DNA of 10,108 nucleotides from contig NW_021827761.1 in assembly GCF_006345805.1 (NCBI RefSeq), positions 1 through 10,108 on the forward strand, in the 5' to 3' direction. Positions within the stretch are counted from its first letter, which is position 1. Every line of letters begins with the position of its first letter. The DNA comes from Octopus sinensis. Its lineage: Eukaryota. Of this stretch, positions 7,157 to 10,108 are shown piece after piece. Under the pieces are notes generated by a model, which searched no databases, was not told the DNA's origin, and worked only from the letters and a program-made list of their open reading frames with translations. Position numbers and translations under genes: made by a program.

Positions 7157-7270
7157 TTTAAAAATGAATCAAAAATAGAAATGGACTGGCTATTGCAACG
7201 GTTCTCGAACGCCGTTATCCGGGGGAACAGTTTGGCGATTCGCCAGGCCTCTAGCCTTCCCTTTGATTAA
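7157..7270 (+). mobile_element. Second CRE-type non-LTR retrotransposon 3' coding fragment
   Basis: Reads FKNESKIEMDWLLQRFSNAVIRGNSLAIRQASSLPFD*, the same QRxSxAxxRGN terminal motif as 3324-3428 but a divergent family. It forms a GC-rich island in AT-rich DNA. Confidence 0.65.
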
Positions 7271-7701
7271 TCGATATTAATTGATAGACAACTGATATAA
7301 TGTTAAGTTAAAAAAATTGATATTAACTTTAAATTTTATAATTTACCAATTAACAACTTCGAAGTATTTTTTGTGACCGGTTTTTGAGCGGACCAGGTGC
7401 CTATATTAAAATTCAAAATGGATAAACTAATTTATTTGGTTTAATGGATAAACTAAAATAAAAATTTGTTTTATTTTTTATTTTTTTGCAGAAAATTAAA
7501 AAAATCAAAGAGTTTAGGGGAGGCATTTATTCAAAAAAACATTTGCTCACTCAGATTTTTTTGTATAGAACGATAAAATCAGAAACAGCTAAAGAAATTA
7601 TTTAAACATTGACTAATTTATTGTATAAAACTAATATGCTCAACATAAAGAAATACTGCAGATTTTGTGTTACTATTTAATAAACAATTACTATTTAACT
7701 T

Positions 7702-7917
7702 TTATATTTCAAGTAAAAAACTTCCGCTATACCGTCTTTTTGTTATACTGGCAATGATTTTGACTTTTTCGGAAAGATTTTCGTACTCACCCAAAGAAAG
7801 AGTTTGCCGCGCATCGCAGCGAAATTGTTTTGGTTGGGGATGCACATTGATCAATATCCCATATGCTCCAACAAAAACCGCTGCTTTTGAAAGTGCTGGA
7901 ATAATATCTTCATTTCT
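7702..7917 (-). pseudogene. C-terminal fragment of a class I-beta DAHP synthase (3-deoxy-7-phosphoheptulonate synthase; KDO8P-synthase fold family)
   Basis: The stop-free minus frame reads RNEDIIPALSKAAVFVGAYGILINVHPQPKQFRCDARQTLSLGEYENLSEKVKIIAS...* and matches the I-beta terminal motif (..AA.A.GADG++IEVHP.P..A.SD..Q.L...EF..L). The metal-ligand E of IEVHP is replaced by N. The N-terminal ~200 aa are absent. Confidence 0.8.
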
Positions 7918-8850
7918 CTAATTTTGGGTCTTCTTTATTGAGGATTGCATCCGTAAAGGTCCTCGCTTTTCTAAAATGAGACGTCCTTCTACTGACTCAA
8001 CATGGGAAATTTAAGGCAGCTGTTTCCGTAGTCAATAGGTGAACACATTGAATTATGCTGAACTTCTACAATTGGCTGAACTTCTACAATAATTGTCTCA
8101 TCTTTGAGCAATTCACGTAAACTCCGAATTGTGATTCCATATTGGAATCCTTTAAGAGGAGGAACAATGATGCGATCGCAATAACTGAGGAGAATATTGG
8201 CAGCGCTTGCTTCAACGATCTGTCCTTCCAGATTGGTCATAAAAACTTCATCAAATTTTGACTGAATGGTATTTTTTGTCACCAAAGCCGACTTTAAGTA
8301 ACAGCCTCCAGTTTTTGTTGTAATAGCGTCCTTCGCAATCTTCTTCCATGGTGAGATCTTTATTAAGTCCTTTTTCCTGGTCCAAAAGAGGTGAACAAGC
8401 CACCATGTAAATTTATAGATGGAATGTTAATTTGTTATAGTTGAGTTGTAACATTGGAAAAACAAACTAGCAGATGTAGAAATCACCTGTTCGTTGATTC
8501 CGAATAATCAAATCTTGTAGTTTCTTTTTTGAAATCTTTGAAAAAATTTTCAAAATTCCAACTCATGATCTGTAATAAAACGCATGAGCCTTTAATATGG
8601 TCTTTTAAGCAAAAGATACATCATCTCGAATATGGCCACGTAATCCTGCGTAAAAGTAAGTTTAAAATAAAACGTAAAACGTTTGATAAATGAATCCAAA
8701 CAAAATTAACGAAACCAAAAGAGATAGTTAAATGGTTAAATGTGTTTAGTTAAATGGGAAAAGTAACCCCATCACCTTAAAAAGGCCTGCTTTTTAATTT
8801 AAAATCTTTGTTATTAAGTTTATACTCTTTCTTCAAGTAATCGAATTACG
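7910..8850 (-). pseudogene. ilvE: Prokaryote-type branched-chain amino acid aminotransferase (class IV PLP-dependent) pseudogene
   Basis: Across stops and frameshifts the order is LN*KAGLF(E)G|LRG ... DHIK(R)LM ... IIRNQRTGDFYI ... KISPWKKIAKDAITTKTGGCYLKSALV (catalytic K) ... DEVFMTNLEGQIVEASAANIL ... VPPLKGFQYGIT ... TETAA ... VESVEG ... RGP ... FTDAILNKEDPKLEK*. This is colinear with E. coli-type IlvE. Confidence 0.88.
8646..8775 (-). other. Putative 130-nt GT-AG spliceosomal intron in the ilvE pseudogene
   Basis: On the minus strand, G|GTGATG...CTTACTTTTACGCAG|GA TTA CGT splits the Gly codon of the conserved FEG(I/L)R motif. It has a pyrimidine-rich 3' end, and removing it restores colinearity. 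Confidence 0.6.
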
Positions 8851-8852
8851 TA

Positions 8853-8878
8853 CAGTAGACTGTCGACAAATTGATAGC
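8853..8878. mobile_element. Orphan Tc1/mariner (pogo-like) TIR that truncates the 5' end of ilvE
   Basis: TA (8851-8852) is followed by CAGTAGACTGTCGACAAATTGATA, which resembles CAGT-starting pogo TIRs. IlvE similarity stops at this point. No partner TIR was found in the window. Confidence 0.5.
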
Positions 8879-9115
8879 CAGGCCGCCTTTAATCACCTCA
8901 ATTGTTTAAATCCCAATTCTTTTATTTTGCATCACCAGTGTCAAACCTGTTTTCTACTTTGAGCGCATCCAAATTTTTCTTGAAGAATTTTGATACAATT
9001 GTGTCATGGTGTATCTCCACGGACAGCTTATTGTTGAGGCAATTCCTAAAATAAACATAGAATATCTATTGACTGTTCCTGTAAAAATGATTTGGGTTTT
9101 TGAGTCATTGGGAGA

Positions 9116-9900
9116 AATATCTATTCAAAATACTTTCTTAACTTACGATTGAAAAATGATCAGAGACATCCAAAACCAAATTTCGCCAAAAATGACTTTA
9201 CTGCGAAGCAATTGTCTATGATAAATCAACAAACCAAAAAATACCCAGAATTTATGTCTGGATTTATCAGAGACCCGTCCGATGTCACGCCATCTGAACT
9301 ATATACTCAATTAAATGTGTTATAACCAATAATTCAAAAACACGATAATAAAACTCGGTCAATACACACTACGAAACCGTATTATGTGCGTAGTGAGTGA
9401 ACATTTTGTCATAAAGTGCACCAAAAGAGTTATAAGGCTTATTCAAAGATTTATCAATTTTTATCTAACAAAGAACAGTGAAAAAAATCCGTTAAAACAT
9501 TTATCGGAATGCATCGATCTCATATCTTAAGTCGTTTTACTTAAAATATAAAAGTGAAAAAAACCGTTAGGAGGAACCACTGAAAGTAATCTTAGAAATA
9601 TGAAGAAAATTGCTTGACAAACACGCACCTACGAGAAACCATTGTTGCTATAAAGATTAGCACGACTCTTTGTTTGAATTTCATAAAATAGAGAATAACT
9701 GGAAATAGTACCATTGGGCAGTTTACACAATAACGCAAGTAAACATGATTAACGGACGAGTCATAAATGACGTTAAAATCAGCCAGAAATTTTTGTAAAT
9801 AGCTATTTAATATGCAAATTTCAACACATTGAAGAGGCATTTGATTAGTTCTGGAAGTACTAATTTAAGATTTCTAAACTTTGTCAAATCATTGGAATGA
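9116..9900 (+). pseudogene. Possible heavily decayed long ORF (perhaps a MULE-like transposase)
   Basis: Long stretches stay in one frame with sparse stops. The segment NFNTLKRHLISSGSTNLRFLNFVKSL loosely recalls the MULE 'LK..L....N.R...+V..L' region. The identification is weak. Confidence 0.2.
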
Positions 9901-10108
9901 CGATAGTCCAAACAATATTGACAATAAGACTACACTAGGTGCAATAAAAACCGTTTTTTTTAATACGGCATATTTTGCAAAGATAACCGTGATTTTTCTT
10001 TGTCGATATGGAAAGGGATCATTAAATTACCCCCAAATCAATTTTGTTATATTTTTTTTGTATTGTGTTATATGTCTAAATTAAAAATTTTAATTACACG
10101 AGCGCAAT

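Follow-up and report, generated by a model that had tools for sequence, protein, structure and literature searches.

Insertions of Wolbachia DNA into the nuclear genomes of arthropods and nematodes ('nuwts') are a known phenomenon, in which raw, multi-gene bacterial DNA sits in a host chromosome, is non-functional, carries frameshifts and stops, and stands as a record of the association. Chlamydiae have also been DNA donors to eukaryotes, and the chlamydial-origin genes of plants and algae are ancient, functional and expressed nuclear genes; reduced parasites, in turn, often patch their metabolism with foreign genes. Here we describe a 943 bp fragment of bacterial origin on contig NW_021827761.1 of assembly GCF_006345805.1, deposited as Octopus sinensis. 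It lies at positions 7723–8665 on the minus strand of the 10,108 bp stretch that we analyzed (hereafter the window), and holds the remains of two adjacent genes, a class IV (IlvE type I-like) aminotransferase and a DAHP synthase, that to judge from the alignments come from a Simkania-like chlamydia. It shares with the nuwts each of the features listed above, but its donor belongs to the Simkaniaceae and is not an alphaproteobacterium, there is one 943 bp piece, and the host is neither arthropod nor nematode (it is probably a dicyemid; see below). Unlike the chlamydial genes of plants and algae, it is comparatively recent and dead. It is a fresh example of symbiont-to-host DNA insertion.

The limits of the fragment were set by blastn and by pairwise alignment to a 53 kb Simkania-like contig from a JGI metagenome (Ga0180434_10000586; L086). 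The blastn match of the fossil is 80.7% over 796 columns (E=0), a level that chance would not produce, and refined alignment gives two blocks: window 8665–7911 corresponds to L086 4093–4887 with 87.2% identity over 745 ungapped bases, and window 7909–7723 to L086 5750–5937 with 86.1% identity over 187 bases. The counterpart of the whole fragment is 1,845 bp of L086 (4093–5937), less an 862 bp internal deletion and small indels, and it runs from 92 bases inside the aminotransferase gene to 4 bases beyond the DAHP synthase stop. The alignments to L086 show no homology past either end (7723 or 8665), and comparison of all of L086, including its chorismate mutase, with the window by tblastx reveals no bacterial homology outside 7723–8665. 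The first block is the aminotransferase fossil (7911–8665, minus strand), which retains donor codons 32–296 of 317 and has lost codons 1–31 and the final 21. The second, which a six-frame Pfam scan of 6901–10108 revealed on the same strand directly downstream, is the 3′ end of a Thermotoga-type (I-beta) DAHP synthase (7723–7909, minus strand), consisting of 61 C-terminal codons of 337, the TAG stop and four extra bases, with an incomplete catalytic barrel. These two fossil genes are the only hits of that scan. They are fused at 7909–7911, where aminotransferase codon 296 (L086 4887) abuts DAHP synthase codon 278 (L086 5750) with the loss of 862 bp of donor sequence. The initial annotation had placed an aminotransferase remnant at 7910–8850; the fossil is indeed there, but 8666–8850 falls outside the homology, the fragment reaches down to 7723, and the DAHP synthase C-terminus had gone unnoticed. 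A candidate N-terminus (HLTISFG, about 8716–8800) was likewise rejected, as homology begins at 8665.

The longest open stretch in the aminotransferase fossil is 128 codons (7992–8375, minus strand), and translation of 7700–9100 places its motifs in a single minus-strand frame (KISPWKKIAKDAITTKTGGCYLKSALV...EGQIVEASAANILL...IIVPPL). These include ISPW, EASAAN, and K-T-G-G-C-Y, the site of the family's pyridoxal phosphate-binding lysine. This stretch matches Pfam Aminotran_4 (PF01063; E=4e-11, 43.7 bits with a cut-off of 28.5) and branched-chain aminotransferases in PDB (down to E=3e-5). The fossil KTGGCY and EASAAN align to KAGGCY and EASVAN/EASAAN in relatives, and there is a 2-residue deletion immediately upstream of the lysine site. 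The identification of class IV aminotransferase remnants from ISPW, KTGGCYLKS and EASAAN in the initial annotation is thus borne out by the minus-strand translation, the Pfam match and the L086 alignment. With a first hand-made frame join of the fossil as query (its C-terminal end was revised afterwards), the type I IlvE models of NCBIfam, a collection built by its own description for bacterial and archaeal annotation, score 63 bits (NF005146) and 55 bits (TIGR01122), against 22 bits for PRK13357, the type II family; TIGR01123, the ilvE_II model, was not among the models listed. We take the type II family to include the eukaryotic BCAT enzymes, and the scores support the earlier assignment of the fossil as prokaryote-type, resembling type I IlvE and not the type II family. 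The DAHP synthase fragment matches Pfam DAHP_synth_1 (PF00793; 1.4e-6, 27.9 bits with a cut-off of 25.5), and the solved structures closest to it are those of the Thermotoga maritima DAHP synthase, 3pg8/1rzm (about 7e-8). We note a near-tandem repeat at 8064–8099 in the aminotransferase fossil (GTAGAAGTTCAGCCAATT / GTAGAAGTTCAGCATAAT, encoding VEVQPI/VEVQHN) at the place where the donor has ...CCAATCGACCGGAGCATGATTC; it looks like a small duplication or slippage during decay.

Close relatives of the aminotransferase are few. When the best open reading frame (ORF) of the fossil was compared with 5.8 billion proteins through a word index, no relative was found at E≤0.001, and a full HMMER scan covering 1.84 billion representatives returned just 39 hits, with a top identity of 40–44%; all 39 are IlvE type I-like and the majority score under the NCBI cut-offs. 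One of them is on a contig of a metagenome-assembled genome with RhoGEF, BTB and DUF2709 neighbours, a setting that presumably points to Chlamydiae. A scan of 185,579 prokaryote genomes (one per species) for the subfamily motifs TKAKAGGC and SSWRKF places nearly all members in Chlamydiae, among the Parachlamydiaceae, Simkania and unclassified Chlamydiae, together with a more distant thaumarchaeal group. When these were re-scored with the window translation, a locus on the 'Simkania sp.' chromosome NZ_OZ244056.1 (L023) stood out, with 54.8% identity over 261 residues compared with 29–37% for the other chlamydial loci. The fossil is 66.7% identical to L023 in DNA and 71% identical in amino acids to its aminotransferase, with 68% over 100 residues for the open stretch. 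In a neighbour-joining tree (229 columns), of the kind that the initial annotation had proposed, the fossil and Simkania sp. form a pair with 100% bootstrap support, within a clade of chlamydial homologues that is likewise supported at 100%. A metagenome scan with the Simkania protein led to L086, the homologue of which is 85% identical to that of L023; in the donor frame the fossil shares with L086 75.7% of amino acids in the aminotransferase and 77% in the DAHP synthase part. Alignments and tree together place the donor as a Simkania-like bacterium of the family Simkaniaceae, phylum Chlamydiota.

In L086 the aminotransferase gene (4001–4954, 317 codons) overlaps a complete DAHP synthase gene (4920–5933, 337 codons; NF006421, 469 bits), which is followed by genes for chorismate mutase, prephenate dehydratase and 3-dehydroquinate synthase; before the aminotransferase, on the opposite strand, are prephenate dehydrogenase and an aroD-aroE fusion. 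L086 and L023 have a common gene order of tyrA, a homologous membrane protein, the aminotransferase, the DAHP synthase FXD domain, PDT and aroB, and the fossil retains the order and orientation of aminotransferase and DAHP synthase at 86–87% nucleotide identity. It also has the subfamily motifs KISPWKKIA, GGCYL, EASAAN and VEVQPI, and DIIPALSKAAV...VHPQPKQ. The bacterial copies differ from the fossil in being intact and, by the pattern of their substitutions, under purifying selection, whereas the fossil is truncated, internally deleted, frameshifted and AT-shifted. None of the L023 neighbour proteins (tyrA, membrane protein, FXD ORF, PDT, aroB) found a match in the window by tblastn. In L023 itself the DAHP synthase is cut down to a 90-codon ferredoxin-like-domain ORF directly after the aminotransferase gene (3740–4165; compare L086 4920–6216), and L023 lacks both the DAHP synthase catalytic domain and the chorismate mutase gene that L086 has, which suggests that this bacterium is losing its aromatic cluster.

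The name ilvE is a family label and does not imply function. The fossil resembles type I IlvE (TIGR01122/NF005146; PDB 1i1k and 5ce8) in its class IV fold and in its still legible K-x-G-G-x-Y and E-x-x-x-x-N motifs, but the window copy cannot yield a protein. It misses the NCBIfam IlvE equivalog cut-off (63 versus 279 bits), and so, narrowly, do the intact donor proteins, at 262 and 269 versus 279 bits and at 233 and 240 versus 245.55. Because the donor proteins fall slightly under these cut-offs and are encoded within a shikimate/Phe/Tyr cluster, a role as an aromatic or prephenate aminotransferase in the bacterium seems at least as likely as branched-chain transamination. The earlier description as an E. 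coli-type ilvE was therefore right as to type I and too general as to the donor lineage and the genomic setting.

The fragment is extensively decayed. When the donor frame is followed, 16 indels appear in the aminotransferase part, 10 of which shift the frame; its C-terminal portion changes frame three times, and it has five in-frame stops: TAA at 8662–8664 (donor codon 32, TCA), TAA at 8592–8594 (codon 57, CAA), TAG at 8467–8469 (codon 98, CCG, which encodes the proline in the conserved YIRPF), TAA at 8413–8415 (codon 119, GGG) and TAA at 8011–8013 (codon 255, CAA). The DAHP synthase part has a single frameshifting deletion, of 1 nt close to its end, that puts the original TAG out of frame, and the fragment as a whole has 17 small indels, 11 of which shift the frame. 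The many stops and frameshifts reported in the initial annotation are therefore real. As to the host-like AT content that it noted, the fossil, at 36.8% GC, has moved from the 43–46% of the donor genes toward the flanks (28.8% and 31.1%). Introns within the fossil (GT-AG candidates of 16, 22 and 70 nt) were considered and rejected, as the donor alignment shows plain small indels; at the three frameshifts inspected directly there is no room for an intron, the others being seen only as short alignment gaps. Alternative genetic codes, raised by the several TAA and TAG stops in the fossil and a TGA in the frame of the neighbouring mutase gene (see below), were also dismissed (ciliate TAA/TAG=Gln, TGA=Trp and Condylostoma-type). 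Long ORFs of the host follow the standard code, with TAA as their stop, the TGA falls in a 24 nt GT-AG intron, and the fossil frameshifts abut without intron room.

The distribution of the substitutions over codon positions is informative. The fossil is 88.4%, 87.9% and 85.5% identical to L086 at codon positions 1, 2 and 3, an even distribution, and 79%, 85% and 49% identical to the more distant L023, as selection would be expected to produce. In a three-way comparison of fossil, L086 and L023, the changes unique to the fossil number 91 (about 12%) and are spread evenly over the three positions (30/36/25), as against 11 unique to L086 (about 1.5%; 5/0/6) and 141 unique to L023 (28/9/104). As the L023 changes are concentrated at third positions and those of the fossil are flat, purifying selection acted on the bacterial branches and not on that of the fossil. 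Among the fossil-unique changes, 64 are GC-to-AT and 13 AT-to-GC, and this bias together with the flat divergence indicates that the fossil has been evolving neutrally, under host mutation pressure, since its split from the donor lineage. The donor lineage having changed by only about 1.5%, integration would be recent on the bacterial clock, and the accumulation of about 12% neutral change in the fossil over the same interval suggests that the host mutation rate is fast.

The fossil is embedded in 10 kb of DNA that is AT-rich and even in composition throughout, and in this assembly it is physically linked, on one flank only, to an intron-bearing eukaryotic gene. This encodes an AGM1-type phosphoacetylglucosamine mutase (5187–6874, plus strand; Pfam AMG1_II and AMG1_III, and tblastn to insect PAGM), the end of which is 849 bp from the fossil. 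Its conserved blocks are intact and each of three interruptions is excised exactly by a GT-AG segment (6146–6169, 24 nt; 6396–6436, 41 nt; 6598–6640, 43 nt). There is a –1 frameshift in a run of seven Ts at about 5297–5303, where an eighth T would restore ADTLKLLFFKVGLFASVRS, and this may be either a homopolymer sequencing error or a sign of a broken gene. Closer to the fossil, at a distance of 468 bp, is a transposon-derived peptide remnant (7178–7255, plus strand) with 61.5% tblastx identity over 26 amino acids to positions 16338–16415 of VCDQ01007429.1 (L084), an unplaced 92.8 kb contig of the Octopus sinensis assembly; the matching segment is in an ORF of a retrotransposon-rich region. The transposon end that the initial annotation saw at the 5′ side of the fossil was not recovered, as 8666–10108 has no recognisable feature in the six-frame Pfam scan or in comparison with L084, and the remnant is on the opposite side. 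The contention that the fossil lies in a eukaryotic chromosome fits its presence on one contig with an intron-containing gene, and transfer from bacteria to a eukaryote is the best reading.

We consider it very probable that Simkania-like genomic DNA integrated into a nuclear genome and then decayed without function. A rival explanation of the origin of the gene, a vertically inherited eukaryotic branched-chain aminotransferase that became a pseudogene, shares with the data a fold superfamily and nothing more; the 87% nucleotide identity to a chlamydial contig, the 22 bits for PRK13357 against 63 for type I and the attached bacterial neighbour gene all speak against it, and with the 100% bootstrap pairing with Simkania and the L086 alignments it is refuted, leaving it a vanishingly small probability. 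A gene that was transferred, served the host for a while (in its amino-acid metabolism, say) and then fell out of use, perhaps with an intact paralog persisting elsewhere as the initial annotation envisaged, would account for the legibility of the catalytic-site motifs and for the open 128 codons, and would be in keeping with the use of foreign genes as metabolic patches by reduced parasites. We consider this very unlikely. The fossil-specific substitutions are flat where the bacterial branch has a selected pattern, codons 1–31 are missing, and the fossil is continuous through a deletion junction with the next bacterial gene, which is the pattern of raw genomic DNA and not of a domesticated gene. 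There is no open frame, no in-frame upstream ATG and no intron in the fossil, no trace of purifying selection on its branch, and no protein relative at E≤0.001 in the word-indexed search. With its neutral pattern, missing start and attached neighbour, the fragment probably arrived as raw genomic DNA and was never a working host gene, a well-constrained reading.

The continuity of the assembly is the main residual doubt. A piece of a bacterial genome, possibly of a pseudogene-rich symbiont, could have been misjoined to eukaryotic sequence, and the lack of any diagnostic feature in the high-coordinate flank is compatible with this, as is the decontamination against octopus reads only in the hybrid dicyemid assembly, were that the source of the sequence (PMC6736024). 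We regard such an artefact as very improbable, since the bacterial homology is confined to 943 bp inside 10 kb of uniform AT-rich sequence, the 12% neutral AT-biased decay and 17 indels are unlike a live contaminant, and what lies closest to it in the flanks is eukaryotic, namely a transposon remnant and a gene with introns. Several points nonetheless weigh against insertion followed by decay. Eukaryotic features are recognisable on one flank only, so that a chimeric join at the 8666–10108 side is possible. The homopolymer frameshift in the mutase gene hints at indel errors in the assembly, and a few of the single-base indels in the fossil could be artefacts of the same kind, although its stops, the 862 bp deletion and the multi-base indels could not. 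Finally, the 5′ truncation could postdate a short functional period, for which the flat codon-position pattern leaves little room.

A simple account of insertion and decay is as follows. The donor presumably lived inside cells, in association either with the host or with whatever the host itself inhabits, and a piece of its aromatic cluster carrying two adjacent, slightly overlapping genes would have entered the nuclear genome of a eukaryote with AT-rich DNA and short introns, perhaps by accidental end-joining. The fragment has no start codon, and at some point that we can only infer it was truncated and an 862 bp deletion fused the aminotransferase to the DAHP synthase. It would then have drifted under the GC-to-AT bias of the host, acquiring the substitutions, small indels and stops described above. 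It appears inactive now and most likely always was, and would represent a molecular fossil of an association between a chlamydia and its host. We note that a 25 nt inverted repeat (23 of 25 positions matching) at 7694–7718 and 9535–9559 flanks the fossil, the left arm stopping four bases short of the boundary at 7723. We see no target-site duplication. The repeat may have arisen by chance, given the AT-rich DNA, or may mark the termini of a small element that carries the fragment.

The low-coordinate side of the window is rich in mobile element sequences, with transposon remnants of animal type. Immediately to the left of the mutase gene is a pogo/Tigger DNA transposon copy (3849–5091, plus strand; ORF 3937–4983, Pfam DDE_1 and HTH_Tnp_Tc5), which with two short segments (3251–3311 and 3466–3506) is 96.6–97.3% identical in nucleotides to L084 8298–10804; it lacks about 780 bp that L084 has between the left end and the transposase. 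The next best named match of the transposase is from the microsporidian Dictyocoela muelleri (51% amino acid identity), and its cluster in the protein database consists of one member, from one contig. A 27 nt direct repeat (96%) is present near both ends of the pogo copy (3466–3492 and 5052–5078), and the same pair is found in L084 (8338–8378 and 10764–10790), and is therefore part of the element. A second repeat family common to both contigs is represented by window 1112–1401, with 81% nucleotide identity to L084 8439–8716; this segment lies within an L084 ORF (8429–9052) that by eye is a candidate for the C-terminal part of a long interspersed element reverse transcriptase. The short ORFs at 1497–2100 (LNQSEKIRICKNIQSG..., ...FNG*LYRFKKQFEIKFRILNGESRSAD) resemble by eye the N-terminal DNA-binding part of a degenerate pogo copy and are also a candidate; a six-frame Pfam scan of 1–4000 gave no hit. 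At 7038–7110 there is a stretch like a transfer RNA (tRNA), GGCTCGGTGTTCTAGTGGTATGATTCG...GGTCCCGGTTTCAATTCCCGGCCGACCC, with D-arm and T-arm motifs, for which ARAGORN and Rfam made no call (the tRNA and Rfam scans of the window were negative); it may be a tRNA pseudogene or the head of a short interspersed element. An exact-protein look-up of four window ORFs found none on record.

The genome to which the window belongs bears on all of this. The mutase is at most 35–39% identical to database entries, with insects and fungi the best matches and the Octopus bimaculoides enzyme at 34%. Microsporidian, nematode, rotifer, Entamoeba and Trichomonas hosts were considered and set aside, as none has a close mutase relative (best 39%), and the three ultra-short introns oppose most of them. 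The dicyemid Dicyema japonicum, obtained from O. sinensis, has a mean intron length of 38 bp, 36.7% GC and 49% repeats, and its assembly is an Illumina and PacBio hybrid that was decontaminated against octopus reads only; the word "horizontal" does not occur in the genome paper (PMC6736024). On these grounds we lean, by a modest degree, toward the window being dicyemid mesozoan DNA, and the reduced parasite suggested as host in the initial annotation may be of this kind. L084, which carries an octopus label, would in that case reflect either dicyemid contamination or transposon exchange. The fuller scenario, that the window derives from a dicyemid in octopus kidneys and that Simkaniaceae have infected the germ line of parasites made up of some 30 cells, is a tentative one that we think rather less likely than not to hold in full, and a literature search for Simkaniaceae in cephalopods or dicyemids yielded no information. 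If the window is dicyemid, there would be a parasite inside a parasite inside a cephalopod, with a donor lineage that is alive and nearly unchanged (about 1.5% versus 12%), and the 97% pogo match would mean either that transposons passed between host and parasite very recently or that the published octopus assembly is contaminated with dicyemid DNA.

The interest of the fragment rests on an unusual donor, a probable host and a very clean signal of neutral decay. For scans of horizontal gene transfer it is a caution, in that a bacterial enzyme gene that is still readable next to host genes is no evidence of acquired metabolism, and the codon-position test against a living donor marks this fossil as probably dead on arrival. 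Since the starting sequence is known and the fragment has drifted free of selection, it reports cleanly on the host mutation spectrum, with a strong GC-to-AT bias and frequent small deletions. It offers a datable footprint of an association between a chlamydia and a eukaryote in a lineage for which we found no report of one, and as the donor lineage is extant in public data, the partner can be sought directly.

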